Origin: Octopus sinensis
Taxonomy: Eukaryota
Assembly: GCF_006345805.1 (NCBI RefSeq)
Contig: NC_042997.1
Coordinates: 101,928,001 to 101,992,000, forward strand
DNA length: 64,000 nucleotides
Reading direction: 5' to 3'
Program-made: the position numbers and the translations under genes
The notes under the pieces: generated by a model
Seen by the model: the letters and a program-made list of their open reading frames with translations, nothing else
Databases searched by the model: none
Told to the model about the DNA's origin: nothing
In this document: piece after piece, positions 3,137 to 64,000 of the stretch
Layout: the number at the start of each line of letters is the position of its first letter
Numbering within the stretch: position 1 is the first letter of the stretch

Positions 3137-6100
3137 CTGTAAACAATGATATAAAATGTAGGTTAGCATGTACTTATAACTTAATAATTCAATATGTCTA
3201 GATGCAAGTTACACAAACATACTTGCTGCTACTAAAATTTGTGTTAGTGTCTATATTTGTAATGTGCGCTATAATGGAATCCCACCCAAACCTGTTAATC
3301 CTTAGGTTGTGGTCTCCCGAGCAAAAAACTATTGTTGACAATGGATGGATGTCTGTGGTTTGATGATAAGGATTCTGTTGTTTGGTCAACTGAATTACAT
3401 ATTCGTGAATTACCTTGCTAAATATGTCGCTTGTGAGTTGCAACACATTATTTCTGTAGTTTCTGTTAAATAAATATTGAATTCAACCAAATATGCAGGA
3501 AATACTTCTTCGTTAGTCAAGTAGTATAGAAATAAGTACACAGATTGTTGACTAGTTTTATTAACGTCTTGATGAAATGATTTGATGTAGAGATACTTAA
3601 GGAAGGAGTGGAGTTAAAAATTAATAAAATTTAACAATATTGCCAAAATACGGGCAATGGTGATTATCAAGACAATAACATAGTGAATGTATTGTAATAT
3701 TTTTGTTTGTACATTATGTCCTGTGTTCAAATCCCTTATCTGTTCTCCTTGAGTGGGTAAAGTAAGTACCAATGGTATATTAGTATATTCACTTAATTAA
3801 CCTTACCCTACACATTTTGAGAAAAGAACCAAGATTACCAAAGTTTTAGCTGTAGTAGAAGCAAATTCAATCACTTGAGGGCATACAAAATGTCTTGTAT
3901 TTCTTTCAACTCTTTACATTCTGACTTCAAATACAATTAAAATCAATTTTGCCTTTCATTCATTCAGGGCCAATGAAATAAAGTATCAGTTAAGTGTTGG
4001 GGCTGATGCTATGTACAATCCCTGCTTCCCTCAAAACTGCTGGCTTGGAGCCTAATTTAGGAATAATAGTTAAGTGAGCCATCCAAATTTTCTATGTGGT
4101 TGAGAAGTTCACATTTAATCACACAGTTCTGGATTTGTTTCTGCTGACAAGCACCTTGAGAAAATGTCTCCTGGTTTGTGTGTAGAATTTGGTGGATGAA
4201 AGCTATTGAGTGTGTGTATCTGTGTGCGTTTGTGTGTGATGTTGCCCTCTTTAAATTTAAAGGTAATGGCCCAGAAGAGTTTCCGAGACCATAGCATGTT
4301 GAAACCACTTTAGTAAGTTTACATTATCATTAAAGTAATCAAACTTTTACTTGTTTGGCTAATTGCAAATAATTCTAATTTCATTGGAAGACTAACTGAT
4401 AACTTGAAATATGAATTTCTGCTTCATTCATTTGCTAAATCATTGAATACTTTAATCAAATATTTAAAAGTTTGTTTTATGCAACAGAAGCAGTATTAGA
4501 TTAAAATAGCTATCTGTCTCTCATATTTAATGTAAATATATTGGGGAAAGGCAAATGAACTGTAGTATTCATCCAGAGATAATATTCCTTGTGGAAGTAC
4601 TGTGTTTAAAAAACACAAACACATCAGTAGCAAACAAAAATCAACCAGCAGCAATTTTTTAAACATTTAGAAGTTTAAAAACAAATTGTTCAAAACAGAC
4701 CTACACACGAAAATTAATTTCCAATATGGAATGAATTTTAATGACTGGACAAAGTTTAAAACAGAACAGAACTAACTTTTACTGCAAAAATCAGATGTGT
4801 ATACTCAAAATTTCATTACCCTTACCAACAAAAAGAAATTTTATATACCAGTCTATATCTTCTTGAGGAATGTCATATTTGAAGCTATTTCCCATTGAGA
4901 TGTGTCAAGTTCATTGAAGCAACGTGACTCGCAGAAAATATCAATTCTATTTTTAGGTAGATATTTAACATCATTGTGGAGGCGCAATGGCCCAGTGGTT
5001 AGGGCAGTGGATTCGCGATTGTAGGATCATGGTTTTGATTCCCAGACCGGGCGTTGTGAGTGTTTATTGAGCGAAAACACCCAAAGCTCCATGAGGCTCT
5101 GGCAGGGGGTGGTAGTGATCCCTGCTATACTCTTTCACCACAACTTTCTCTCACTCTTTCTTCTGTTGGTCTGCTCGCTTAGCCAGCAGGGTGGCGTCAT
5201 TTGAAGGCTAAAACAATGCGAAGTGCATTGTGACTAGCGATGTGTAGCAACATCTGATAGCCTGGTCGGTCACGTGATCACGTGATTAAATATCATTACT
5301 GGAAAACATTGAAAACATGCCTGGCCATGGGGAAATATTACCTTGCTTTGAGACAGGTGAGAGATTAACGACAGGAAGGGTATCCAATTATAGAAAATCT
5401 GCCTTAAATTCCATCTGATTCATGCAAGCATGAAAAAAGTGGACATTAAAAATGGTGATGATGATGATAATAAGGAGGCAGAGGAGGAAAAAATAGATAA
5501 TAGTATGCAAAATAAATGTGATGTAAAGATAAATCACTTACATCTGAAGGATACGTTTCGGTATGATTACCAATCTGTTCTTGTTTTAATTCTTCAAGTT
5601 CTGATTCCTTGTCACTCATGCTGACATTGTGCTTTGGTGAATTTTGAAATAACACGACTGAATGATGTTCAGGTGAGTTTTCCATTGATACGCTTGCATT
5701 ATGTTCGGGTGAGTTTTTCATTGATAGACTTGCATTATGCTCAGGTGAGTTTTTCATCGATGCACTTGCATTGTGTTCAGGTGAGTTTTTCATTGATACA
5801 CTTGCATTATGCTCGGGTGAATTTTTCATTGATACACTTGCATTATGCTCAGGTGAATTTTTCATTGATACACTTGCATTATGCTCTGGTGAATTTTTCA
5901 TTGATACACTTGCATTATGCTCAGGTGAATTTTTCATTGATACACTAGCATTATGCTCAGGTGAATTTTTCATTGATACACTAGCATTATTCTCAGGTGA
6001 ATTTTTCACTGACACTCTTCCATTATGTTCAGGTGAGTTTTTACTAAATACATTTGTATTATGTTCAGGTGAATTCTTCATCAAAACATATGCATTGCTA

Positions 6101-9100
6101 TCCGGTGATTTCTTAACTAACACATTCATAGGATTTTTTGATGAATTCTTAATCAAAATACATTGATTGTTCTCAGGAGAATTTTTCACCAGCATGCTTG
6201 TAGTCTTCATCAATGAACTGTCAGGATTGTCAGGTGACCTCATTACCAAAACATTTGCATTGCTTCCAGATAAACTCTTAATCTTTAGACCTGTATTACC
6301 ATTGGATAAATTGTCACCCAACAAATTAGTATTGTCAGGTGAGCTTTTAGTAAGTGCATCTATATTGCTTTCATTTGAATTTTTGCGTTCAAATAAATTT
6401 TTTCCTCGAAGTCCATCTGAAGATGCTTTACCTAATATAGGCTTGATTTTATCTTTGCTTGACTTACTTACTTTCTCCAAACTTTGTGGAACAGGAACTG
6501 CTTTCCTTTTGATACTTGATTTCAGGGCTTTATTTGGTATCTTGTATAGCTTGTCTGGGATATTTTCTTCTTTTTGTAGCATCCGTTCATCTGCACATTT
6601 TTGAGGATCACTATCAATTTTGACATTCAGTTTGTCTTTTTTTAACAATGTGACTTTCTTTAATTCAACATTTTCAACATTCTTTGCTCCGGTTGGACTC
6701 ACAGGAGAACTTGCTGCCCTTGTATCTTTTCTGTATTCTTTTTGTCGAACAATTTGATCATTTTTTTCCACTAAAATATTTGGTTCAAGTTTAGGAAATG
6801 GATAGTCTTGTTGTGGAAGGGATTGATTGTCTTCTGTATTTTTTATTCTGTCCAATTTGACTGAGTTGATAAAATTGTCTATATCAGGAGCCGCTTTTTG
6901 GTTCACTTTACTTTTGTCTGCTGAATTCATTACTTCAGGATGTTTTTCAAATTGTACTTCACATATGCCATTGGTAGCTTCGTAAGTACGTAAGGACCCC
7001 TCATTTTCTGCATAATCAAATGTAAGTTCTTTACTGAATCTACATTTTGGCATTTTATTTTCTAATGTCTTACTTTTACGCAGTTCTTCTCGGCTGTCAG
7101 CCATTTTAACTTTTTCCATTGATCCTCGGTAATCACTAACACTATGTTCACTATGCAAGCTTGTTCTGTCCAAACTTATGGTGCTGCTTTGACTGAAGAT
7201 GCTATTGTGACTCATCCTGACATTTTGCCAAGAAGCACCATTTGCATTATTTAAATCAGCATTTCTTGAATCTGTCTGAGTCGCAACATCATGCATCTGT
7301 ACTTTGATCTGATTCCTTGGTACAATAATTATTTCATCATCAGAATGCTCATAAAGTAATGGACGAGTTAATCTCTCTGTGGAACCTATAAGAGAAAATT
7401 AGCATGAAATCTTATATTTATTATTTTAATACATCCATCCAGCCAGCCAGCCATACATCCATATATCCATACATACATAGGCTCGTTAGCTTTGGCAGAG
7501 ACAAAATTGATCCTCAAACGCAGAACCATTCACATGGCAAAAATCTACTGGCCAATTGCATGCCATAACTTAATGTATAAGATACATACATATTTCTTTA
7601 TTACCCACAAGGGGCTAAACACAGAGAGGACAAACAAGGACAGACATAGGTATTAAGTCGATTACATCGACCCCAGTGCATAACTGCTACTTAATTTATC
7701 GACCCTGAAAGGATGAAAGGCAAAGTCGACCTCAGCAGAATTTGAGCTCAGAACGTAACGACAGACGAAATACTGCTAAGCATTTCACCTGGCGTGCTAA
7801 CGTTTCTGCCAGCTCGCCGTATAAGATACATACAGTATGCTTAATCCTCTTCCCCCAGGACCATTGTGAAACCAATAACATCATCACAGCAGAACAAGCA
7901 GCTGGGAATAAGAGTGTCTGGGGATGTGCTGAGCAATTGTTAATCAACAAAACTGTGATGTCAGAGGTGCAAGAGCATAGGAGGAACCTAATTATAATGA
8001 GGCTAGACTACAAGAAAGCTTTTGACTCTGTTCCCCACTCATGGATGTTACAAGCCCTTCAACTTGCTAAAGTTCCAGTGAGAATAGTCAAAGCCATAGC
8101 TGACCTGACTTCATCATGGGCCACCATCTTGAAATTAAGCACAAAGTATGACTGTATTATCACTGATATAATACAGTATCACAAAGGCATATTCCAAGGG
8201 GACAGCCTCTGTGATATTTATACTTTCTGTAAACTCCTTGTCATTCATGTTAAGGAAATCTGTAGGATATCTCACTGATTCCCAAGGAGACATGATGTTG
8301 TAGCTGGGACACAGTAATGAAATCCATCGGAAGGATAATCCTGAGGACAAAGAAATAAGAACCCACAATATATCAGAAGTCACAGCCACTCATAATAAAA
8401 AGGAATACTGGTGGAATGTACCAGGGAAGACCTCAATAAAATATAAGCACAACAGACCTGATATAATGATTTGGGATAAGAAGAGAAGCTGTACACAGTT
8501 GTGGAAATTAGCTGCCCATTGAATGTGAAAAAGAAAACACCTATGCTGAACTATTGAGAAATTTGCAGTTACGCTATCCAGATTACAAGTTCAAATTTAT
8601 ACCTGTAATTATTGAGGCCCTGGGATATGTAACACACTGCTAAAATATCAATCTTGAGAAATTAGGCTTCTCAAAACCAGAAAGGAGACAGCTAATTCAA
8701 AGACTACAGATCCAATCCATCACTGGAACTGTAAAAATCTGTAAAACTTTCCAGAAGTTTATCATTTAAATATATATGAGCATGGCTAGATATGCAAGTA
8801 TATCCATGAAAATACATACATAAAGCAAAACATGCAAATTTGCACATATGCATGCATACATACATACATACATACATACATACATACATACATACATACA
8901 TACATACATACATACACATACATACATACATATATGTGTATATACTGTTGCATCTTGGGAGGGTCATTACACCAATAATAACAAACACATTAACTGGTTC
9001 AATATCACTTCTTTATTGTTATTCAATTGGTTAAATATTTAACCAACTAACTAATTGATTGCTTGTTTAACTTGCAGGTTATACAACTGATTGATTGCTT

Positions 9101-26088: not shown

Positions 26089-27649
26089 CACACACACACA
26101 CACACATACATATATATGACAGGCTTATTTCAGTTTCTGTCTACCAGATCCACTCACAAGACTTTGGTTCACCCAAGGCTGTAGTAGAAGACACTCGCCC
26201 AAGGTACCACACTTTGGGACTGAACCTGGAACCATGTGGTTGGGAAGCACACACAAAATATAAAGAGAGACAGGATGAGATAACCAAGATGATCTTTGCA
26301 AACCTACTACAGCAATATAACATAAAAAAAAAAAACCCCAGAAAATCAGAAACGTACAAATAGAAAAGATAACAACAAGTGAAAAGATTAAGATCTTAGC
26401 AGATAGCCCAGTAATAACATCAAACCATATAGAAACAATAAACCTGATATTACAACTTATAAAAGCAGTGAACCTGAAGTAATTTTTTCATCAGGCTCCT
26501 ATAATCACTCTGCAAGCAGAGCACAAGTTAATGCCCAAAAAGTAGTTGACTCAATGAAGAATGAAGTAATGAAAACTGGTACAGTATCTTCACAGGAAGT
26601 AATTGCTACTACTGTACAAAATCTCCATGAGGAAACAAAATCACAGTGCAAACAATCCCTGGACTTTCACATAACATACATAACTGGAGGCAGCATGCTT
26701 TAGGGATTCCAGCACTTCCAACTTGCAGGTCAGGATTTGAAATTCCTGATACAGTTAAGTATTTAGAAGATGGGTCCTTGTTTTTGGGCCTTGACAGGTT
26801 TGGATGATTTAGAAAGCTCCTAGAATTGAGCCTGTGATGGGACTTTCAAGGTATCTCCTAGTTTGTTGAGTCATTTAGTGACACTACATATCATCACTGG
26901 AAGTTTGTGTGTGCCCCAACTATTTGGGCCTCATATCATCTTCTTCTGTCTTCTGTGTGTTATTTAAGACCAAATTGTTGACCCGTAACCTGTCTCATGG
27001 ACTTTGAAAAAGCTCCCCATAATGCATTTATTTCTCTATTTCTCTTTTAGGATGATGCAGAAATTATCAAAATGTTTTTAAAAATTCCAAAAAATTCTCC
27101 AAGAGTTCTCCATGAATCTTGGAGTATTTTTAAAAATTTAAATCTTCAGATTCAGTCCTCATGAATTTTCAAGGCATTAAACATTAGTTCAGAGAAAAAT
27201 TAATGAAATTTATCACTTGGGTTAATTATAACATATTACATTAGACCAAGTTAATACTTGGCTGAATAAAAGAATATTATTCTTATCTCAGTTAAATATT
27301 CATCTGAAAAGGAAAAAAAAAAATTGCACCCTTAAAATACAATTATTAAGATATACTAGAAAATAAATAGAAATAAGTATGTATACTAACCAGAAGTATG
27401 ACAGGGGATACACCCATCCACAAGATTCGCCAAAACCAGCTGACTTTGTGTTGAATCATATGTGTGATATTTGCACAAAACCGTTTTACACCGTAAACCC
27501 ATGCAATTGCTACACACATACAGATACCTATAATCATCACGGGGAATCCTGTACACTCGTCCATCAGTTGTAAAATATAGAGTCCTCCCTGAAAATTGAA
27601 TCAATATAATTTAAGTAAAGTTAAAATAAATTTAGTAAACTTATCATTC

Positions 27650-27701
<52 letters not shown>

Positions 27702-29063
27702 GTAATAGAAATAACTACAAGGGTATCAAACTGAAGGTCACAGTGAGGGTCATAGACCATCTCATTAGGGACAGAGTCTGCTTACATGAGATGCAGTTCG
27801 GTTTTGTGCCAAGTAGAAGCACTACTGATGCCATATTCCTGGTTTGACAACTGCAGGAGAGATACCTAGCTAAAGATAAACCCCTATACTTAGCTTTTGT
27901 GGAGTTGGAGAAAGCCTTTGACAGGGTCCCTCAATCCCTTATCTGGTGAGCGATGTGGAAACTGGAGATTGATGAATGGTTAATATGGGCTGTACAGGCC
28001 CTATACAGAGAGGCCATTAGTAAGGTTAGGATTGGCAATGAGTATAGTTAAGAATTCTGGGTAGAAGTAGGGGTCCACCAAAAGCCCCCAGTCCCCTTTT
28101 ATTCATCATAGTCCTCCAGGCAATAACAGAGGAATTCAAGACGGGTTGCCTCTGGGAGCTCCTCTATGCTGATGACCTGGCCCTCATAGTAGAATCACTA
28201 GCGGAACTAGAAAAGAAATTTCAGGTGTGGAAGCAAAGTTTAGAATCAAAAGGCCTTAGAGTTAATGTCGCAAAGACCAAAGTTCTAGAAAGTAGGAAGG
28301 CAAATTCATCACACACACCCTCAGGTAGGTGGCTCTGCACAATCTGTAGGTAGAAACTCCATAAGATGTACCCAGTGTAAGCTATGGGCACATAAGAGGT
28401 GCAGCAACATCAAAGGAAGATTAACCGAGAAGATAGCTTTCGTGTGCGGCAGATGCACAGGGGCAATAAATACCACAGATGCTCAGAAAACAGATTCCAT
28501 CACACTCCAGGGGAAGAAACTAGAAGTAGTTGATAGCTTCCATACCTAGGTGACCAAGTTAATAGTCAGGGTGGATGCTCAGAGAGTGTTATCACTTGAA
28601 TAAGAATAGCCTGAGTAAAGTTCAGAAAGCTTCTACCCCTACTGGTGACAAAGGGCCTCTCGCTCAGAGTGAAAGGTAGATTGTACGATGCATATGTGTG
28701 AACTGCCATGCTTCATGGCAGTGAAACATGGGCCGTGACTGCGGAGTACATGCATAGGCTCAAAAGAAATGAAGCTAGCATGATCCGCTGGATGTGTAAT
28801 GTCAGTGTGCACACATGACAGAGTGTAAGCACCTTGGACATAAGAAGCATTGGATGTGGCGTGCAAGAGAGACGTTTGCGCTGGTATGGTCATGTACTAT
28901 GGTTGGATGAAGAGAAATGTGTGAAGAAGTGCCACTCCCAAACAGTTGAAGGAATTCAGGGTAAAGTGTCTTGTCAAGAACACAACACGCAGCCCGGTCC
29001 GGGATTCGAGCTCACAATCTCACGATCGTAAGCTCGACGCTCTAACCACTGAGCCATGTGCCT

Positions 29064-29105
<42 letters not shown>

Positions 29106-30015
29106 GTGAAGGGAAGAAATGGAGCTGAACGAAGATTCTACATAATTCCTTTTATTATCTTCTACACATGTTTCAAAGGCCGCAAATTTCCAAATTCGGA
29201 TTGAATAAGGAGACCATTTGCAGCATTCTCTTCAGGAAAATCCAGGAATTTAAAAATCCAAAACAAATGCGCAGCAAGGTAGAACAAAGCGCTCCTTAGG
29301 AGCCCATGAAAGCACAAAACTGTCTCTCACTGTACGTTGACGTCTGGGGGGGTGGTGGTGGAGGCCGACGAAAATGTCCGTTGGAATCAATCGGGTTCAG
29401 ACAGCGGTCAATCCTGGTAGTGGGAGAAATACTGAAAACCAAATGGTGTGAATATATTCTGTGTAATTAATGTTCAGATTGTTTTAAGAATTAAGGCTAT
29501 CTAATATAGGTGTGGGACCCTGCCTACATGTATATGTGTGCACGCCTGTGTAAGTGTGGGAGTCTGTCAAGCAGCGGGTGGAGGGAAAGAGAACTGCTGA
29601 TTTTGTTGGTCGTGTCTGTGTGTCCGTCTGTGGTCAGTTTGTAAAGAGATAACTTGTCAAATCAAAGAGAACATAATTCTTGATCTCACTTCTAAAAAAG
29701 TAGCGGACCAAACGCTAAAATTCCTGGATTTTCCTGAAGAGAATGCTGCAAATGGTCTCCTTATTCAATCCGAATTTGGAAATTTGCGGCCTTTGAAACA
29801 TGTGTAGAAGATAATAAAAGGAATTGTGTAGAATCTTCGTTCAGCTCCATTTCTTCCCTTCACTAAATATATCGAACTTCAATTATCCGCGCTAAGGCAC
29901 GGTTGAGACACCCCAAGGTCGTAACTTCAATCGTGTCTTTTCTGTTGTGATTTTTGCTACCCGGGATCGGTTAAATTTTGAATAATCCTTAACAAGATAA
30001 TTCATTTATCCATTT

Positions 30016-30060
<45 letters not shown>

Positions 30061-33000
30061 ATCAAATATAATGTATGCACATACACACACACACATATAT
30101 ATGCATGCATATGTGTGTTTGCATATATATATATATGCAAACACACATATGTGTGTGTGTGTGTATGTGCATACATTATATTTGATAAAAAGCAAAAAAA
30201 AAAAAAAACTATGAAAGTCTGTTGGTTTCTTTGGTGCCACTGTAGAAATGCAAAGAGAGTTGTAAAGCACTGCAGGGTCATCAATACAGGTGCAGAAGTA
30301 GCCAAAATAAAATATGGAATAATATTGTTAATTTCAGCCAAGTTATTATGTCTTTTCTTGGTTTTATTTTTCGACACTGGCTAATAGAAGTAAAACTTGA
30401 TCTCTAACTTAGAATCACATGAATATGCATGTTAGTAAAATGAATATGTATATGCATGGTAAGTGTATATGCTCTCTCAATTACACATTCTGAGGACGAT
30501 ATATTATTGTTCTCTGTTGTCCTGAGAAAGTTGTTATCTGGTAGTTACAAGGATGACAAGATTTTTGTTAAAGGAGACTTTAATGCTAGATTAGGGACTG
30601 AGCATGATATATAGCTTTCCCTGGGAAAACATGGCCTTAGTAAAACCAACAGCAATATACTGCATCTCCTGCATTTATGCAATGACTATAACCTGGCTAT
30701 CAGCAAGACTGTTTTTCTTCAAAAAAGCAAGTACATCTAGCAGTAGGAAATTCATGTGAACATAGAAAATGGATGATAATAATGATGATAATGATGATAT
30801 ATATATAATACATGCAAACATATATACATACATAATATACATACACACACACACACATGCATGCATGCATACATACATGCATGCATGCATACATACATAC
30901 ATACATACATACATACATACATACATACATACATACATACATACATACACACATACACACAGAGCAATAGAAACTGATGTGGATTCTCCTAATCCAATTA
31001 ATTTGTGGCACAGCAAAGATAGGTAAGACATTCCCAAAATTCTCCATCTGAGATTCTAATGTGAATAGGTGCACACACCTGGGTGTATGCATCGACAATT
31101 CAACCAACATACCAACTTAACCACATATTTACAAACACTGGGAACTCTCTTAACTCAAAAAGTCTTGTTGCTTTGTTAGCAACCAGCTTGAACTCTCTCA
31201 AGAAGAACTCAAAGAAAAATCAAACATTCATTCATTTATCCATACATGCATACATACATACATACATACATACATACATACATACATACATACATACAAA
31301 CATACATACATTCATACATATATACATACATCAACAAAAACAGTTATGTTTCTTACCTCTGTTGTCATAGGTAAACCCATGAAGTAAAGTAACATACAAA
31401 CAATAAATAACACTGTCACTCTCTTTTTACGCAAAACTTCAATTTTTTCATCAATAATAGCAGTGACAACAGTTTCGACAACGGTAATTTCTGTGCTTAA
31501 ACCCATCATTACAAGCATCAGGAAGAAAAGGATTGCCCACAGTGGGGCTGCTGGAAGGTATGTAAGGGCAGCAGGATAAGCTGTAAATGCAAGTCCAACA
31601 TCTAGGAGAAAAAAAAAAGGGATTTTAAATGTTAAAATTAGTTTATAGAAATGTAAAATATTTAAATAATATCAAGAATAATTTAATTTTCATTTTTTGT
31701 TTCGTTTTTAAGTTTACAATATAATCTCATAGAAAATATATGACAACTTAGCACGTTTTGTTTTTACCCATCTGAATCTAATATCAGCAATTAAGGCATA
31801 GAACAGAAAGTCATGATATAGGGAGCAGTCATGAGCAAACAGCAGCCTGCAGGACTTTCTGAATAGCATGCCTAAGTGAAAATTTACCTTGTATTTTTTT
31901 AGCAGTATGGCCTGTCTGATGGTTAGCCATGTCTCATGCAACCTGCTTCTCATAAAAGTTGCCCATGCCTGTTTGAGAAACTTAAACATTCTTGTTCTTA
32001 TGTCACTGATAAAGCAAATGTTCATCTATTAACAACACTAAATGTTTATTACTGACAATAAAGCTGGTGTTATTTTTCTTTCTTCGAAACCTTACCCTTT
32101 CTTATTACATAAAAGCTGATATGTTTAAGCTTATAAAGACCCCTCTGGGTGACCACTTGACCGACTAGAATAGTATCCAAGTCTTATAAACAAAAGTATT
32201 CAGGTTACATCCATTTTGTCTTTTATTCAGGTATATTGTACACTGGTTGATATTACAGGATGACTTTAAAAGTGGCATATATAGTGGTTGTTGTACTGGG
32301 TGCACTGCCACACCCAATGCCACCAAATTTCATGCAGGAGTAAACAAAAGTTTTCATTAAAATTTGCAATTAAATTTATGAGTAAGGTTAATATTTATAA
32401 TGAATTTGCCATTTTTGATGGGTGTACAGTGCACATCTAGCACACCCAGAATATACACCCCTGGACCTTAGAGCAACAAGTTGACAGAATTGTTAACATG
32501 CCGGGTGAAATGCTTAGCAGTATTTCATCTATCCTTATGTTCTGTGTTCAAATTCTGCTGAGAGTGAATTTGCGTTTCAGCCTTTTGGGATCAATAGAAT
32601 AAGTGCCAGTTGAGCATTGGAGTTGTGTAATCAACTCACCCCCTCCTTCGAAGTTGCTGGCCTTGTGCCAAAATTTGAAGTCGATATTACTGGATGACAT
32701 TATCCAATACATGATTCTTTTTAAAGATGGCAAGTTGTGATTTAAAGAGAATTTGGTTATTTCTATAAGATCTAATTGATAACTTAGATTTTAAATGTCA
32801 AATTACAACTGAGAACTCTTTTATTCTTTTACTTGTTTCAGTCATTTGACTGCAACCATGCTGGAGCACCACCTTTAGTCAAGCAAATCGACCCCAGGAC
32901 TTATTCTTTGTAAGCCTAGTACTTATTCTATCAGTCTCTTTTGCCGAACCACTAAGTGACGGAGACATAAACACAACAGCATCGGTTGTCAATCAATGCT

Positions 33001-39794: not shown

Positions 39795-42700
39795 TCATTA
39801 TTAGGCAGTGAAATGGCACAACATTTAATGTGTTGGTAAAAATGCTTTGTGGTGTTTCTTCCAACTTTTTATATTTTGAGTTCAAATACTGCTTAGGTTG
39901 ACTTTGCCTTTCATCCTTCCAGGGTTGATAAAATAAGTACCAGTCAAGTACTGGGGTTGATGTAATTGACTTATCTCCATCCCTAAAATTGCTGGCCTTC
40001 TGCCTATAGTATAAAGGATGATTATTATTATTATCATTATTATCATAAAAAGGACAAATATTCATCACATATATTCATGCAATTAGTAGCATCAATTACT
40101 TGATCTTATGTGATCAAAGATCCCTATCAAGATGTGATTATCTCTAGATATAGGATAAAGTGATTTGGCCTGATATACAATGGAACTGGAATACTAGTAG
40201 CATTTTTAAACTCCTGATTTATGAGCAGTTAGTGTTCAATATTTATATAATGTACCATATTTGCCTCATTGTTATTATTGTTTTCAGTTAAAATATGAAG
40301 ATAATATTACCATCTCAGACGAAAATTTTTTAGAAGAATAATAATAATAAAAGAAAAAAAGTCTTCCTTCACCATACTCACATATACAAAAACAAAATAA
40401 GTACAATTCTCTTTTGGAACAGTGAATCTTGAAGCACATAAAGCAATAAATAATCCTTTCTACTACAGCCATGTGGCCTGAAATTTTGTGGGAAGGGATA
40501 GTCAATTACACCGACCCCAATGCTTGCCTGGTACTTAATTTATTGATCCACAGGTTTTGAACTCAGAGTGTAAAGTGTTGGAAAAATGTCACTAAGCATT
40601 TTATTTGGCATGGTAATTATTCTGTCAGCTCACTATCTTTATAAAATTCTAAATAACAGTATGTAATATTGGGTTGAAAATCCCTTTGGGACAGAAGAAG
40701 TCGAAGGCTGCCTGCAGGATATAAACCCATGTCTCTTGCTGACATGACAGCCTTCAACTTTTTCTATCTAAAAGGGTCTTTCAATCCAATATTTACATGC
40801 TATTATTTATAGCTTCATGTGATGTGATTCAAGATCCAATGTTCTAAAAATTAACTATTCCACAGAATCTTAAAAGTTTATGAAATACTTCAAAAATGTT
40901 TCATACATACCTTCCCAGAAGATTTAATTCCTTTGAAGACACATAAAAAGACAATCACCCAGCAAAGAAGGAGACACAAAGCCAACTGCCAGCGAATGGT
41001 ACCAAGCTGGCCTATACTTTTACTTGTATTTAAAACCCATATACTGTAATAACAAATATTTTAAAAGAGGCGATTCATAGTAATGCTAAAAAAAAAAAGG
41101 TAAGAAGACAACATACAAATTTATGTGAATTTTAGAATATTGTAAGTAATATTGTTTTCTAATTTTGGCACAAGGCCAGCAATTTTAGGGGAGGGTGTTC
41201 AACAGGTACTTATTTTATCAACCCTGAAAGGATGAAAGGCAAAGTCAACTTTGGTGGAATCTGAACCCAGAACATGAAAATGGATGAAATGTCATTAAGC
41301 ATTTTGCAAGGCATGCTAACAATTCTGCCAGTTCATTGCCTTAATATTGAAAGTAATATTGATTTCAAATTTTGGCTGCTCTCGTCAAGAGAGTGACTGC
41401 TGGAACACCCTAGACTCTGCACCATACCACAGAAGCAGGAGAACCTAGTCATGGCTGTCAGATAATTTCTGCGACCACATCACCCTTAATATCTAGCCAC
41501 CTAACTCCTCAGATTGCAACACCCTTGATTATTATGTGTGGGGTGCAGTTGAGTGAGAGATCAACAAAACTCCTTGTAACATCAAAGATGAACTGAAGGG
41601 AAGAATTATGGCAGCATTCACCAACTTAAACAAGGAGACCATCCAGAAGAGTTGCAGGAGATTCCAAAGTCGTCTGGGGGCTGTAGTCAAAGCCAATGGT
41701 GATTTTATTTAATAAATTTACTCTTTAGTATTTCAAAATATTTTTATGTAATTTTAGTAAATATATCTGTTAAAATAAGATGTCAGTGGTATATTCATTT
41801 TTGCGTAACTTAGATGACAATTTATTCACCGCACTCTGTATGTGTGTATGTATATATGTATGTATGTATATATATAAATATATATATATGTATATAAATA
41901 ATGAAGCTAAAGCACTCAGAGTAATGCTTCCTGGTACAGGTTGACCTTGACCTCTGCTGGGCCTGTGCACTAAGTTTTAATGTTCTAACTCACTTCCGCT
42001 GTTTACAGCAGTGCTTCGAAGTAACATGTGTAATGTGTCACCATGACAAAGTTGTCATGGTGATACCTACTCAGAGGCCTATGCAAAGTTGCAGAAAGTA
42101 TAGAGAGGAATGTATGAGCTGCACACAAATGTATGAGTGGTTCAGACATTTTCAAGATGGCCGAAAACATTTTGATAGTGGTGAATGTTCTGGGAGACCA
42201 ACAGCCAGCAGAACTGAGAAAACATTGCAAATGTGCGTGCAGCTGTGAGGGGAAATCATCAAGTCACCATCCATGAGTTATCAGAGGATGTGCAGATTAG
42301 TTACAGTTCAGTTCTGTCTATTGTCTCTGAAGATTTGGGTATGAGATGTGTCTGCCAAGTTTGTATCAAAACTGCTTTCAGCTGACCAAAAAGACACTTG
42401 GGTTTCAGTTGCACAAAATCTTGATTGTGTCAAGAATGATGAAAACTGTGTGTAGACCTCTGAGCAGGTAATGCCAAGCTTTAGGGAAAATTTGATGCAG
42501 ATTCTCTGCTCAGTTTTCTTCGTCATGGTCAATGCTACGAATACATGCTACACACGTTACTTCCAGGCACTGGAAGTGAATTAGAATGTTAAAACTTAGT
42601 GCACATGCAAAGCAGAGTTCAAGGTCAATCAGTGCCAAGTGGCTTTACTCTGCATGATTTAGCTTTGTTACCATGGCAACAGTCCAGATACTTATTGATC

Positions 42701-44593
42701 AGACCATGTATATATATATATGTATTTATAAACAAACTTTGGAGAGCAAGTGTATGCACACACACACACAAACACGTACATATGTATGTAGTTAATAATG
42801 TAATAGCATGTATGATACATTATTAGTGAGTTTAGAGCTCAGTGATTGGTTCCACATTAAACTCCTCTATTTTATGCATAATGAATTCAATCAACACATT
42901 GGAAAGTAAACACAAGTGCAATGTCTGAGTGACATAAAATTAAAAGAAGTTAGGTTACTGATGTTCTTATGTTTTAATATACACGTGTTTCAATGAATCA
43001 GCAGCTCACTTCCTCAGTATTTCAGCAAAATATCAAGAAAATAAATGATTAAAGAAATAAAAAGCCTAAATGTTTACTGATAGCATTTATGCTGTTTGGC
43101 ACAACAGAAGGCAGCAATACTGCAAGATGCCAAAATCATTGTAATCTTCAGATGTCAACAAATGAAGTGAATGTCACACAGATCAAATTGTGTGTAGGGT
43201 GCATGCACACACACACGCACACAGCTATGTGGTTAAGAAGTTTGCTTTGCAACTACCTAGTTTAATTCTTCAGTGTTTTAACTAGTCATATCCGACCAAA
43301 ATATTCTACCTGTTTGATGTTCAAACCAGCCAGACCTGACCTCTCACACTTATCTTACTTTACAATGTCATTCTAAAAGAATCAATCACATCATTGAAAT
43401 CATGAAGCTATGAGACAACGTATGATTAAATCAAGTCAATGTGAATAAATAATCAACACATTTGACAATAATCTGAAAGCTAAAGGGTTAGGTTTCATTC
43501 CTACTGTCTGGCTCTGTGGTCAAGTGTCTTCTATCGTAGCCTTGGGTTGACTAATGCCTTGTGGGTAGAACTGGAAATAGATACTATACTGAATCATGTG
43601 ATGTGTGAGTGAGTGTTCATGACAATCTATGTATATGTACATGTTCTCTTACATACATATAAGATGAAAGAGAAAAAGAGAAATTGGAATAAAACTTGGA
43701 TTTTATAGTGAAGTGTCAAGGGATTTCACTATTGTTGACTTTGTAAGAACAAAATAAGTTCAGTTGTAATTTTCTAATTTGGTTCAATTAACAAGAGATA
43801 ATCAAAACTAAGCCTGAACTTACTAAAAATACTCCTCACTGGGAGTCTTGAAAGTGACATTGGCTTCCAAGCTTCCTGATGAGGAACCTTCAGCAAACAA
43901 CGAGAAAGATGCATTCCACATACAATTAGTTGAGACGGAAATATTAGTCAAGTTCAATTCTTGTTCTTTGGTGTTGTTCATGATGTCGGAACAATTTGGC
44001 AGGTGATATTTTTCCGTTTTGCAATCTGAAATATAAGGATAAAAACAAGCTAAGTCATTCAGAAAATATTGCATACGGTGTGATAAAAAAACATAATAAT
44101 AAAAATGAATAAATAAATAAATAATAATAATAACAACAACAATAACAATAATAGAGATTGACTGTTTATTAAAATGAAAATTAAACAAATGAACAATATT
44201 TCGACTCTGTGTGTCTTTCATAAGTTCAAAATTTTAAATAAAATTAAATTCAAAGATAGAAAATGCTGAAATATTCAAAATTAAATGAGAATAGCTAAGT
44301 AAAACGATGTCATCAGTAGGTAACAGAAGGAAGGAAAGAAAGAAAAAGACAAAAAGAATGAATAATTTTTTCTCCAATTCTTTCCTTTCTTTTTTGTTTT
44401 TTTCTTTCTTTCCTTCCTTCTGCTACTTTTTTGTGAAAGACCGAAGACTGATGATGTCATTTTACTGGGAAAGAAATGCTGTTATTCCGGTTTAATTTTG
44501 AATGTTTCAGTGTTTCCTATCTTTGAACTTAATTTCACTTTATATTTTGAACTTGAAGACACATGGAGTTTCAAAATATTGTTCATTTGTTTC

Positions 44594-44644
<51 letters not shown>

Positions 44645-45352
44645 TCAATAACAACCACAAGAACAACACAAGATCAAAGCCTTCCCACCAGAAATCACCA
44701 AAAACATGTAATAAAAAGAAATACAAGTAACTGCAGAATATGTGGTGATAGAGAAGAAATAATAAATCATATTGTCTCTGGCTGCTCAGTCCTGGCTAAG
44801 AAGGAATATATTCACAAACACGACAGAGTTGGGACCTATATACACTGGAAGCTATGCCAACACTATGGAATAACAACAGAAAAAAGATGGTATAGGCACA
44901 CACCAGAAAAGATCAAAGAAAATGAGAAAGCAGCCATACACATGCAGATATAGTTGTCAGAATTCACTGAGAAAAAAAATGCTTTTTAATCAATGCATCA
45001 ATACCAACAGATGACAATGTTTCTCTAAAAGAAATGGAGAAACTTTCAAAATACAAAGATCTGGAAATAGAGGTAACTCAAATGTGGAGACTAAAAACAG
45101 AAACAATTCCTTTTATAGTAAGTGCATTAGGTGCGATAAAAAAAACATTTAAACAAATACATAACAAAAACACCAGGACTTACAAGTATATATAACATAC
45201 AGAAAATAGCACTACTAGGCACTGCACACATCCTATGCAAAACACTTTTAATAAAGTGAAAATAAGAGCACCACAACAAACCACAGCACCTACCCAAGGT
45301 GCACAGAGTTGTGCTCGGTAGTGCAGTGAAAGTATGTGATAAAAATAAGACT

Positions 45353-45411
<59 letters not shown>

Positions 45412-47178
45412 CCCAGATGCTGTACCAGGCAGTGGCTCTCATGGCTTCTGATCTTAACTGATTGGAAGTGTTACGATGTACATGTTTTGTCTTTGTGTAA
45501 AAGTTGGGCTACAACAAATATTCTGCTCAGTACCACAGCTTTGCTTGTCAGTTGCTTGACCATAACCACTTAGCATGTCCCTTAGTGGCTGGCAATATGT
45601 GCATCACTGATCATGAACAGTGAAGGCGCATGGCTCAGTGGTTAGAGTGTCAAGCTTATGATCATGAGGTTGTGAGTTTGAATCCCGGATCGGGTTGCGT
45701 GTTGTGTTCTTGAGCAAGACACTTTATTTCACATTGCTCCAGTTCTCACAGCTGTAGAAATGAGTGGTGACGTCACTGGTGCCAAGCTGTACTGGCCTTT
45801 GCCTTTCCCTTGGATAACACTGGTGGCGTGGAGAGGGGAGGCCGGTATGCATGGGTGACTGCTGGTCTTCCATAACAACATTGCCCGGACTTGTGCCTAG
45901 GAGGGTAACTTTCTAGGTGAAATCCCATGGTCAGTCATGACTGAAGGGGGTCTCAGATCATGAGCAGGAGTAGTGGGGAGGGAGCATCATAGTCCTGTGT
46001 TGAGAAGGATTCTTTGGTATTTGAATAATTCACCTCTAGAAACATGGGTGTTTTGTTCACCATCCTTAAACAACCCTTATTCAGGGACCTTTTAAGAGGG
46101 ATGGGCTGCTCAACCTGAAGAAAATTCTAAGTAGGCTCCACCTACAAGATCATGTACTGTTTATCTTGATATGAGGTCACCATAGCATATGTATATGATT
46201 GTGATGCATGTCCCTTGTGTACCCTTATCAGGCAAGCCATCAATTTGATGGCATGAGCTGCTGTCTCACTCTATAATAATAATAATAATAAAATAATAAT
46301 AATAATAATAATAATGCCCAGATGCTGTACCAGGCAGTGGCTCTCATGGCTTCTGATCTTAACTGATTGGAAGTGTTACGATGTACATGTTTTGTCTTTG
46401 TGTAAAAGTTGGGCTACAACAAATATTCTGCTCAGTACCACAGCTTTGCTTGTCAGTTGCTTGACCATAACCACTTTAGCATGTCCCTTAGTGGCTGGCA
46501 ATATGTGCATCACTGATCATGAACAGTGAAGGCGCATGGCTCAGTGGTTAGAGTGTCAAGCTTATGATCATGAGGTTGTGAGTTTGAATCCCGGATCGGG
46601 TTGCGTGTTGTGTTCTTGAGCAAGACACTTTATTTCACATTGCTCCAGTTCACTCAGCTGTAGAAATGAGTTGCGATGTCACAGGTGCCAAGCTGTATCG
46701 GCCTTTGCTTTTCCCTTGGATAACACTGGTGGCGTGGAGAGGGGAGGCCGGTATGCATGGGTGACTGCTGGTCTTCCATAAACAACATTGCCCGGACTTG
46801 TGCCTAGGAGGGTAACTTTCTAGGTGCAATCCCATGGTCAGTCATGACTGAAGGGGGTCTCAGATCATGAGCAGGAGTAGTGGGGAGGGAGCATCATAGT
46901 CCTGTGTTGAGAAGGATTCTTTGGTATTTGAATAATTCACCTCTAGAAACATGGGTGTTTTGTTCACCATCCTTAAACAACCCTTATTCAGGGACCTTTT
47001 AAGAGGGATGGGCTGCTCAACCTGAAGAAAATTCTAAGTAGGCTCCACCTACAAGATCATGTACTGTTTATCTTGATATGAGGTCACCATAGCATATGTA
47101 TATGATTGTGATGCATGTCCCTTGTGTACCCTTATCAGGCAAGCCATCAATTTGATGGCATGAGCTGCTGTCTCACTC

Positions 47179-47239
<61 letters not shown>

Positions 47240-60185: not shown

Positions 60186-60454
60186 AGTATTTTTTATTAT
60201 TTATCAAAAAGAGGTAGAGAAGAAAATTATAATTTTAAATATGATTTTTCCAAAATTATCAACATTTTACTATTCTAAGATAGGGAATTTTAAACTATGA
60301 AGAAAGTATCAAAGTATATGTAAGTTTCACTATATCAAAAACTAAATTTCAAACGTCTAGAGAATGTAAGATGTAAGAATCCTTTCTACTGGAAGCACAA
60401 GGCCTCAAATTTGGGAGAAGAGATCAAGTTGATTACTGGTACTAATTTTATTGA

Positions 60455-60935
60455 CCAGGTCTTCTCAAGCACAGCATATCTCCAAAGGTCTTGGTCACTT
60501 GTCATCACCTTGGTGAAGCCCAACGTTCGAAGGTCGTGCTTTACCACCACATCCCAGGTCTTCCTGGGTCTACCTCTTCCACAAGTTCCCTCTACTGCTA
60601 GGGTGTGACACTTTTTCACACAGCTGTCCTCATCCATATGCAACACATGACCATACCAGTGCAGTCATCTCTCTTGCACACCACATCTGATGCTTCTTAT
60701 GTCCAACTATTTGCTCAGGGTACTTACACTCTATTGTGTATGCACACTGACATTACACATCCAGCGTGTCATATTAGCTTCATTCTTTGCAAGCTTACAC
60801 ATATCCTCAGCAGTTATGGCCCATGTTTCACTGCCATGTAGCATGGCTGTTTGCACACATGCGTCATACAGTCTACCTTTTACTCTGAGTGAGAGGCCCT
60901 TTGTCACCAGCAGAAGTAGGAGCTCTCTGAACTTT
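60455..60935 (-). mobile_element. RTE-clade LINE 3' fragment, same family as 27698-28960
   Basis: CVKKCHTLAVEGTCGRGRPRKTWDVVVKHDL...LWRYAVLEKT. Confidence 0.85.
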
Positions 60936-61789
60936 TTTTAAAAATAATTTTAAAAAAATCATATATTATTATTTTAGGATGAAAGAAAAATGACATGCTG
61001 ATGAATAACATCACCGAGTGTAAAACCACTGCAGCCAATAAAAATCTAGGAGTGTGCACTCAATACTGGTTGCATGTTTGCCCTTCTAGAAACAGTAGTC
61101 AACATTTTCACAAACCACACCTTACCATCTTAAAAAAATGAGAACATATTGGATAGTGGAGTTCAGGGTACATTACTCCTAGAAAAGAAAGGTTTGTCAT
61201 CACTGGTATGCCATGATCAGCCTATCATATAATCATATGTCTACTAAATAAAGGCTGACTTCAGTCAAAGCAATAACAAGCATATTGCAATTGAAGTTGA
61301 AAAAGAAATGGATTCAGAATGATACCAGAAAAATGAATGTTTCTATAGCAGTGAACCATCGGAAATTTATAAGAAAAGGATACTTGCTATGTGGAAACTA
61401 TTGACAAGTTCTCAATCTAAGAACAATGATTAGTGGATCAAATATATTTAATTAAATGAAAAAAGTAATGATCTGGAGACTTCAGAAGGGAGTGTGATCA
61501 AATGCAAAAATTGCAGTTGGTAGTGAGGAGAAGGGAAATTATATTTATAATGTCTATAATGAGTTTGGTATTTGTTCCAGTCCAGTAAGGAAGACCCACA
61601 GTAGAGTATTTACTCAAGTCAAGTTGTAGGTATGTGAAATTTTTTACGACTTTATTCAATGGAACAACCCAACTCCTGCATTGAACCACTTCTAACCATG
61701 TTAAATAGTTTTAACCTTAAGATCATTGGACACAAGATTGTAAAAACATGCAGTGCTATAACAATATGAAAGTCGCAATGCCAACAACA

Positions 61790-63087: not shown

Positions 63088-64000
63088 TTAGGTTGGCAAC
63101 TAAGTTCCTGCCATTTTACAAAATTTTTGAAATTATTGTGTTTTTAAATTTTGGAATCTATATTTTTTTCAAGAATTCTATTTTTGAATCATTTTGGAAT
63201 CTATTTTGTTTCTTTTCTAGTTAATTTTAGTTAGTTTTTGTTTATTTTCAGATCATTAAAATGGAATGTCAAGTTAGGAAAAACGAGTATTTCCGACTCC
63301 TCCTTCTTTTTGCTTTTAGTGAAGGTTCTAAGGCCGCAAGAATTGCTTGTGATTGGTATGCCAAGTTCAAAAAATGGAAATTTTGACCTCAAAGACGCAC
63401 CTCATTCTGGTTGTCCAGTTGAGTTTGATGAAGAATGATTAAACCACCTTTTGCACGAAAATTCTCGTCAAACTGCTTTGGAGAAGCATCTTCACTCGAT
63501 GGGAAAGGTTCAGAAGTATGGAGCATGGGTTGTGCATGCTTTAAGTGACAACAACAAAAATCAACGAGCTACAATCTCTGCTAGTTTGCTTGCTTGTCAT
63601 TGCTCAACTCATGGACACAAGCAACGATTTCTTTACTGAATCATTACTGGTGATGAAAGATGGTGCCTGTACATCAATATGAAGCAGTGTAAGGAATGGC
63701 TTAGCCCTGGTAAACAAGTGACACTGCACATGAAACAAGTTCTTCATCCACGTAAAATGATGTGTGTATGGTGGGACTGGGAAGGGATTATCCATTACAA
63801 ATTGCTTGAATGGAACGAAACGGTCAATGTGGAACTCAAAAGATGGAACGACTCAACACGACTATTCAAGAGAAATACCTAATCGGCAGCATGGAGTTCT
63901 TCTGCTGCATGAGAACGCCCGCCTTCATATCGCCAATATGACCAAGGAAGACATTCAAATGCATGGCTGGGAAGTGCTGCCACACCCACCATACTCTCCT
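63088..64000 (+). mobile_element. mariner (DD34D) transposon, pseudogenised, runs off the window end
   Basis: ta|ttaggttggcaactaagttc TIR; ATG at 63261; WVVHALS, IITGDERW, VWWDWEGIIHY, LHENAR, WEVLPHPPYSP; stops and frameshifts. Confidence 0.9.

Follow-up and report, generated by a model that had tools for sequence, protein, structure and literature searches.

Type I hammerhead ribozymes have been associated with Penelope-like elements and retrozymes (PMC4209133, PMC8557442), and the link to these two kinds of element that was drawn in the original prediction for the present locus agrees with both sources. In invertebrates, helix III of the type I hammerheads has been described as 2 bp with a palindromic tetraloop (PMC7229834; PMC4209133). 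Hammerheads with such a minimal helix III are reported to need a second copy in the sense orientation with which to dimerise; in vitro, single motifs of this kind were found to be inactive and dimers to be of low activity, and conservation of the G10.1-C11.1 pair was described as high among them (PMC4209133). Dual minimal hammerheads lying on opposite strands, 100-700 bp apart, were reported from Schistosoma and attributed to truncated elements of the Penelope class (PMC4209133). The scheme described for Penelope-like insertions comprises an adjacent inverted and 5'-truncated copy and a hammerhead located towards the 3' end, and it shows (TA)n among the preferred targets (PMC8557442). Moreover, a purified Penelope-like element protein was shown to cleave and extend both DNA strands, and for the Anolis element the start of reverse transcription was found to lie within the RNA, some 85-92 nt beyond the hammerhead cut (PMC11167929). 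Such cleavage and extension of both strands provides a direct mechanism for the formation of twin, outward-facing copies. Retrozymes, in turn, are thought to derive from Penelope-like pseudo-LTRs (PMC7229834; 10.64898/2026.07.22.740005).

Here we describe a 776-bp non-coding feature (29097-29872) located in an intron of an octopus SLC6 gene, within a window of 64 kb that makes up the whole stretch of DNA analysed. The feature is a near-perfect inverted repeat with one type I hammerhead-like motif in each arm. With a probability of about 60%, we read it as a young, non-coding and heavily 5'-truncated hammerhead-bearing retroelement of the Penelope-like (pLTR/retrozyme) kind, inserted as head-to-head copies at a (TA)n tract; both the family of the retroelement and its origin by twin priming are what we infer from the layout described below.

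Anatomy of the inverted repeat and its hammerhead-like motifs

According to the repeat finder, the two arms (left, 29097-29251; right, 29718-29872) are 155 nt long each, are 99% complementary and enclose a spacer of 466 nt (29252-29717, no strand assigned). The original prediction had given two 154-bp arms with one mismatch at a distance of 467 bp, from which our values differ merely in the placing of the boundaries. When the arms are compared directly, their sole difference is T29143 vs C29826. The outer ends of both arms run into a palindromic ATATAT; the arm terminus reads TTTAGTGAAGGG on the plus strand, to the right of a (TA)17 tract, and the 3' end of the arm reads ...CCCTTCACTAAA.

No ORF is found in the element, in which all six frames are interrupted by stops, and no RT, GIY-YIG or transposase domain is found in it by Pfam, which returned two sub-threshold matches at chance level only. 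The spacer, for its part, has stops in six frames and no credible Pfam match. The GC content of the element is 41%, compared with 35% for the window, and its CpG o/e is 0.67, compared with 0.24. Together with the low divergence of the arms (1/155), these values above those of the surroundings point to a recent foreign insertion. Across the window as a whole, the CpG o/e of 0.24 is accompanied by a TG value of 1.37, a strong depletion that is unusual for an invertebrate-looking gene.

Further copies of either arm, of the spacer or of the right flank were searched for within the 64-kb window and none was detected, and the repeat finder gave no direct or tandem units besides (TA)n in 28500-30500. 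The six-frame translations of the arms had no match at E<=10 among 5.8 billion proteins, and exact-pattern scans of metagenome contigs and viral contigs returned no related copy. Among the prokaryotic genomes scanned, a single 20-mer matched, in a Chitinophagaceae MAG; this match has no CUGANGA upstream and is explained by chance, about 2 such matches being expected.

The right copy of the hammerhead-like motif lies at 29728-29812 (+), where it is supported by the descriptor, by a full-length alignment to Rfam RF00163 and by its fold; the left copy, at 29241-29157 (-), matches the descriptor as the mirror of the right one and is sense with respect to the SLC6 pre-mRNA. On the plus strand, at 29728-29812, the motif has the sequence attttc-CUGAAGA-54 nt-GAAA-CAUGUGU-A-gaagau. 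Three helices surround the core, with helix I open, and the core contains C3U4G5A6N7G8A9, G12A13A14, the A15.1-U16.1 pair and an H17 that is not G, every core position being aligned to RF00163. Helix I has 6 bp including one G.U; in helix II, whose arm spans 54 nt, 12 pairs are formed and the base contains one mismatch. Helix III is the sequence ACAUGUGU, which is self-complementary if G.U is allowed; in a monomer it would form 2 bp, A-U and C-G, that close an AUGU tetraloop, and in a dimer an 8-bp quasi-palindrome. The complete type I anatomy that the original prediction had ascribed to each arm, with its coordinates, could be read directly and is matched by the descriptor. Its predicted minus-strand cut at 29163/29162 agrees with our mapping from the GUA cleavage triplet, which ends at A29806, and its caveat regarding the 10.1-11.1 pair is borne out as well: this pair is G.U (g29742/t29794) and not G-C. 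Three wobble pairs fall on TpG dinucleotides, namely U11.1, the U.G of the extended helix III and the U.G of helix II. Given the CpG o/e of the window, this is the pattern that would be expected from CpG decay of a tighter ancestor, and U11.1, within its TpG, may be a decayed CpG.

The type I descriptor demanded the exact core, at least 5 bp in helix I, at least 4 bp and at most 60 nt in helix II, at least 2 bp in helix III and an H17 other than G. On both strands of the 64-kb window it matches only the two arms, with 0 matches in the reversed sequence. First-order Markov simulation at medium stringency gave a chance expectation per 64 kb of 0.005 (200 windows) and 0.0065 (766 windows). At the stringency of the motif itself (helix I 6/6, helix II with at least 8 pairs, helix III with at least 3 nested pairs), 0 matches were obtained in 766 simulated windows and 0 in the reversed real sequence. 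Since the arms are copies of each other, the two descriptor matches count as one independent event, and chance matches of the medium descriptor in the order of a hundred would still be expected from a genome of gigabase size. The simulations render the motif credible without proving it, and a chance origin is unlikely.

In the covariance-model searches, no Rfam match was found at the gathering threshold in the whole window, and no hammerhead in an E-value scan of 1.2 kb; the microRNA-family matches that appeared in the latter scan lie on the (TA)n palindrome and were discarded as an artefact of composition. When 116 nt were scanned, Hammerhead_1 (RF00163) aligned end to end (positions 1-45) to exactly 29728-29812, with a score of 17.7 bits, about half of the gathering value of 34, and E = 0.047 for the 116-nt search. 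The covariance-model check named in the original prediction accordingly gave an alignment over the full length of the model, although at a score below its threshold. Much of this shortfall comes from the 50-nt insertion in helix II, which is heavily penalised by the model. As for the folding of the monomer, the hammerhead-constrained fold is predicted at -15.5 kcal/mol vs -18.5 kcal/mol for the MFE structure, a gap of 3 kcal/mol; in the competing fold, AUUUUC pairs with GAAGAG and sequesters the CUGAAGA box. The predicted stability of the 91-nt region is not unusual (z = -0.96).

A relaxed descriptor gives a third hammerhead-like match in the window, at 43023-42974 (-), reading gaaata-CUGAGGA-19 nt-GAAACACGUGUA-uauuaa. 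It is located in another intron of the same SLC6 gene, in sense orientation, and has the helix III palindrome of the arms, but with CG replacing UG. This third match has no Rfam hammerhead match and no homology to the arms in its flanks.

Intronic surroundings and origin of the element

The intron is crowded with repeats. A 3' fragment of a LINE at about 27.6-28.95 kb is followed, from left to right, by a SINE head, by (TA)17 and by the element itself; beyond the latter, a unique stretch of 144 bp leads to (TA)19, to the right of which lies another palindrome. The LINE fragment (27600-28954, +) has a YADD motif and is cut off in the middle of its ORF at 28954, beside the tRNA-derived SINE head (28962-29068, -), which has AGTGAAGGC as its 5' end. 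The (TA)17 microsatellite (29068-29102, no strand assigned) abuts the terminus of the left arm and is the likely insertion target; the right end of the element has only TATAT, and the next tract, (TA)19 (30019-30056, from the tract scan, no strand assigned), is 144 bp off. Tracts of (TA)>=8 make up only 0.7% of the window. The (TA)19 tract may once have formed a single target, since split, with its counterpart on the left, and the 144-bp unique segment (29873-30016, no strand assigned), which has no similarity elsewhere in the window, may either be original flank or prolong the right copy at its 3' end. To the right of (TA)19, a microsatellite-like palindrome at 30057-30190 consists of two arms of 47 nt, with 96% complementarity and 40 nt between them.

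Across (TA)17, the SINE 5' end AGTGAAGGC faces the arm terminus AGTGAAGGG, and the two form a 9-nt palindrome. On the plus strand, the arrangement is GCCTTCACTA-(TA)17-TTTAGTGAAGGG, at which the left 9-mer is the SINE 5' end (minus), as confirmed by two other SINE copies, and the right 9-mer is the arm terminus, present too at the end of the right arm. The resulting palindrome, CCTTCACTA-(TA)17-TAGTGAAGG, lies at about 29060-29115. In the window, TAGTGAAGG occurs 4 times vs 0.42 expected, the other 9-mer sites being 29857-29865, 45619-45627 and 46525-46533. Read along the minus strand, the order is the 3' end of the hammerhead copy, (TA)17 and the SINE 5' end, with the same orientation throughout. 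This palindrome could be a stem-loop at the start of reverse transcription or a tail, a scar of hairpin repair, or a coincidence. A derivation of the arm from the neighbouring tRNA-SINE was tried and abandoned, the alignment beyond the terminal 9 nt scoring no better than shuffles. Likewise, an empty site could not be reconstructed from the interrupted LINE, which is not resumed within 3 kb.

Several features of the element correspond to the scheme of Penelope-like insertion. The ribozyme sense strand is (-) in the left arm and (+) in the right arm and in both copies heads to the outer end; the 3' end of the left copy is therefore directed leftward and that of the right copy rightward, both outward, with the 5' ends joined in the middle of the element. 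In both copies the cut site is 58-66 nt from the arm end, which places the hammerhead near the 3' end with the presumed start of reverse transcription some tens of nucleotides past the cut, and each copy has as its neighbour an inverted, 5'-truncated partner. An ORF with RT and GIY-YIG is absent from the locus, as is to be expected of a copy truncated to its 3' end, and this absence neither proves nor excludes such a derivation. At the ends of the element, no tail of 30-40 bp could be recognised, and 29873-30016 is at most a candidate for an extension.

On the preferred reading, the (TA)n microsatellite inside the SLC6 intron would have served as the target of insertion. Both 3'-OH ends of the cleaved target would have primed reverse transcription of the element RNA, beginning some tens of nucleotides downstream of the hammerhead, and the two cDNAs, of about 150 nt and about 620 nt, would then have been joined at their 5' ends. 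Such a process would yield identical inverted arms with their 3' ends outward, each with one hammerhead motif from the parent, and the spacer (29252-29717) would presumably be the upstream sequence of the longer copy. Against the reading as a truncated Penelope-like insertion stand the sub-threshold covariance score, the G.U at 10.1-11.1, the 54-nt helix II, a right flank that is not (TA)n for 144 bp and ends that show no recognisable tail, as well as the lack of a related copy in the window or in the searched collections; the 9-nt palindrome shared with the SINE head is left unexplained by it.

The near-perfect terminal inverted repeats, set around a non-coding core of MITE-like size, would also suit a non-autonomous DNA transposon (a foldback element or MITE with long TIRs) that inserted at a TA of the microsatellite, the hammerhead-like motif being in this case a product of chance or a captured retroelement fragment. 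The inverted repeat enters ATATAT at both ends, where any TA duplication would be invisible because these ends are palindromic, and TA-targeting mariner-like remnants are present in the same window. Nonetheless, the arm termini TTTAGTGAAGGG are unlike the mariner end of the window, TTAGGTTGGCAAC at 63089, the arm translations match no transposase domain, no second copy exists in the 64 kb, and a full hammerhead descriptor match arising by chance in 310 nt of arm sequence has a probability of about 1e-5, as scaled from the simulations. We consider an origin as a DNA transposon unlikely. A derivation of the arm from a mariner in particular, to which a weak resemblance of 'FKGRKF..D..RRP' to the mariner HTH and a shared AAGGCCGCAA decamer might have pointed, was rejected, since no Pfam match was obtained and the mariner end of the window is unrelated.

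Perhaps the locus began as the insertion of a single hammerhead fragment, whose end was duplicated in inverted orientation at a later time by a local rearrangement such as fold-back repair or replication template switching, or else the palindrome was created during assembly. The surroundings are in fact rich in palindromes, with CCTTCACTA-(TA)17-TAGTGAAGG on one side and the 47-nt arms at 30057-30190 on the other, and (TA)n tracts are self-complementary and prone to form hairpins; in addition, the end of the neighbouring LINE fragment at 28954, with no continuation nearby, suggests a rearrangement. Yet the outward 3' polarity and the distance from hammerhead to arm end are predicted by twin priming with no need for an extra event, and the arms differ by one T/C, which speaks against a duplication of purely computational origin. 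Both variants taken together, a later inversion or an artefact appears quite improbable to us.

Other repeats are scattered over the window. Further LINE fragments are found at 60386-60941 (-), at 7742-8278 (+), with an RVT_1 match, and at 44498-44953 (+), with a zf-RVT match. At 45387-47200, a tandem duplication consists of units of about 906 bp with 97-100% identity, and in each of them an (AAT)n tract is present together with a head of the tRNA-derived SINE (45619-45726 and 46525-46632). A mariner-like remnant at 63089-64000 is degenerate, with its TTAGGTTGGCAAC end at 63089, a frameshifted transposase and a weak HTH_48 match. A mariner-like inverted pair at 41899-42670 has 99-nt arms that are 81% complementary, with mariner N-terminal fragments on both strands.

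The host gene and its pre-mRNA

The SLC6 gene is encoded on the minus strand. By tblastn with SLC6 homologues, exons were located at 53993-53799, 51002-50835, 49339-49196, 41087-40908, 36455-36216, 33541-33392, 31596-31357, 27591-27382 and 23436-23248; one more, at about 44.2-44.0 kb, was recognised from its ORF only and is absent from the tblastn output. The best matches of these exons are in diverse animals, across phyla, at only 58-68% identity. The element sits in the 3.8-kb intron between 31357, where the upstream flanking exon ends, and 27591, where the downstream one begins. The original prediction had called this intron 8, and it is indeed the eighth when counted from the TM1 exon in the window; its true number is uncertain, as at least one exon probably lies further upstream. 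An ORF of 616 aa with about ten tandem repeats is found at 5446-7296 (-). No Pfam match was obtained for it and the protein collection contains no record of it; it may be either a long C-terminal SLC6 exon or an unrelated ORF.

As the gene is read from the minus strand, transcription reaches the right arm, antisense to the ribozyme, first, and the sense hammerhead follows 466 nt later, exactly the order that had been proposed for this locus. For the 776-nt RNA of the minus strand, a fold of -361 kcal/mol is predicted, with both arms lying wholly in one duplex. In thermodynamic terms, the predicted 155-bp pairing, at -361 kcal/mol vs -15.5 kcal/mol for the isolated hammerhead, is in line with the proposal that the ribozyme would be trapped in a duplex, and the 5' half of the hammerhead could, on this model, pair with the pre-existing antisense RNA ahead of the synthesis of its 3' half.

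On these grounds, the locus could be regarded as a regulatory module, in which the sense hammerhead would cut the SLC6 pre-mRNA and the antisense arm, being made first, would hold it in a 155-bp duplex that feeds ADAR or Dicer. Geometry and strand order are as the original prediction gave them, and the arms are predicted to pair completely. However, the hammerhead is a weak one, scoring below threshold, with a G.U at 10.1-11.1 and a competing hairpin favoured by 3 kcal/mol. Hammerheads with this type of helix III are reported to require dimers and to have low activity in vitro, and each transcript holds one sense copy. In addition, the insertion is young and bears no sign of selection, and retrozymes are reported to be depleted from introns. 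A regulatory role of this kind is a doubtful proposition. The claim of a ribozyme that would be active but for its silencing by the antisense arm fares poorly for the same reasons: with a single sense copy for a helix III of the dimer type, a competing local fold and the G.U at 10.1-11.1, the sense hammerhead in the pre-mRNA is probably inactive even without the antisense arm.

Intronic inverted pairs of transposons form long dsRNA, as seen for inverted Alu pairs, which are edited by ADAR, and for hairpin-RNA loci. Processing of the predicted duplex by ADAR or Dicer is a reasonable, generic expectation that would apply to any long intronic inverted repeat. Given that the layout is already known for truncated Penelope-like retroelements, the element is most likely an ordinary passenger of the host transcript. 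That the inverted twin is more than debris, be it as a co-transcriptional switch that would couple polymerase speed or helicase/ADAR activity to SLC6 pre-mRNA cleavage, as a 155-bp hairpin used by the host as hairpin-RNA or editing hotspot, or by a functional pairing of two non-autonomous retroelements through the complementarity of the arm 3' terminus and the SINE 5' end (CCTTCACTA/TAGTGAAGG), is very improbable.

Comparison with described hammerhead-bearing elements

If our assignment is right, the locus adds another case of hammerhead motifs scattered through animal genes by insertions of Penelope-like elements or retrozymes, and it would illustrate how one integration event can create a long dsRNA hairpin within an intron. 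It could also offer a clean and datable test case, with arms that would have been identical at birth, one sense and one antisense motif in a known transcript and an unusually long helix II. Such a locus is suited to asking whether passenger ribozymes cleave host pre-mRNAs, and whether an inverted layout neutralises them. A literature search for the helix III strings returned primer sequences only. The layout of a truncated Penelope-like element and the pattern of twin hammerheads have both been described already, and the locus belongs with these known forms, opening no new category.

With the Penelope-like insertions, which have their hammerheads in the pseudo-LTRs (Cervera & de la Pena 2014, PMC4209133; Craig et al. 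2021, PMC8557442; PMC11167929), the element has in common a minimal palindromic helix III near the 3' end, inverted copies with outward 3' ends, heavy 5' truncation and, at its left end, a neighbouring (TA)n tract. Moreover, the two octopus motifs, on opposite strands, are separated by about 490 bp, a distance that falls into the range of 100-700 bp given for the dual hammerheads of Schistosoma. It differs from the Penelope-like insertions in that this locus has no RT/GIY-YIG ORF, no direct pseudo-LTR and no identifiable tail; its helix II is 54 nt, compared with 4-8 bp in Penelope-like hammerheads, and its 10.1-11.1 pair is G.U, compared with G-C.

The metazoan non-LTR retrozymes (Cervera & de la Pena 2020, PMC7229834; preprint 10.64898/2026.07.22.740005) resemble the element in being non-coding and of low GC, and in having a type I hammerhead whose helix III consists of 2 bp and a tetraloop, as in the invertebrate examples. 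Retrozymes, though, are arranged as head-to-tail tandem units of about 170-400 bp, whereas here two inverted partial units occur with no direct repeat, and head-to-tail units with one hammerhead each are absent from 28500-30500. They are also reported to be depleted from introns, unlike this intronic element.

The amniote hammerheads known from introns (Rfam HH9/HH10; de la Pena & Garcia-Robles 2010, as cited in PMC7229834) share with the octopus motif their location in an intron of a protein-coding gene and the sense orientation. They are single, deeply conserved and stable as monomers, in contrast to the octopus hammerhead, which is young, transposon-borne, below the model threshold and accompanied by an antisense twin.

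Finally, the near-perfect 155-bp intramolecular duplex predicted in the SLC6 pre-mRNA likens the locus to inverted Alu pairs and to hairpin-RNA loci. The members of an inverted Alu pair, however, are two independent insertions, whereas on the preferred reading both arms of the octopus element would stem from one insertion event.
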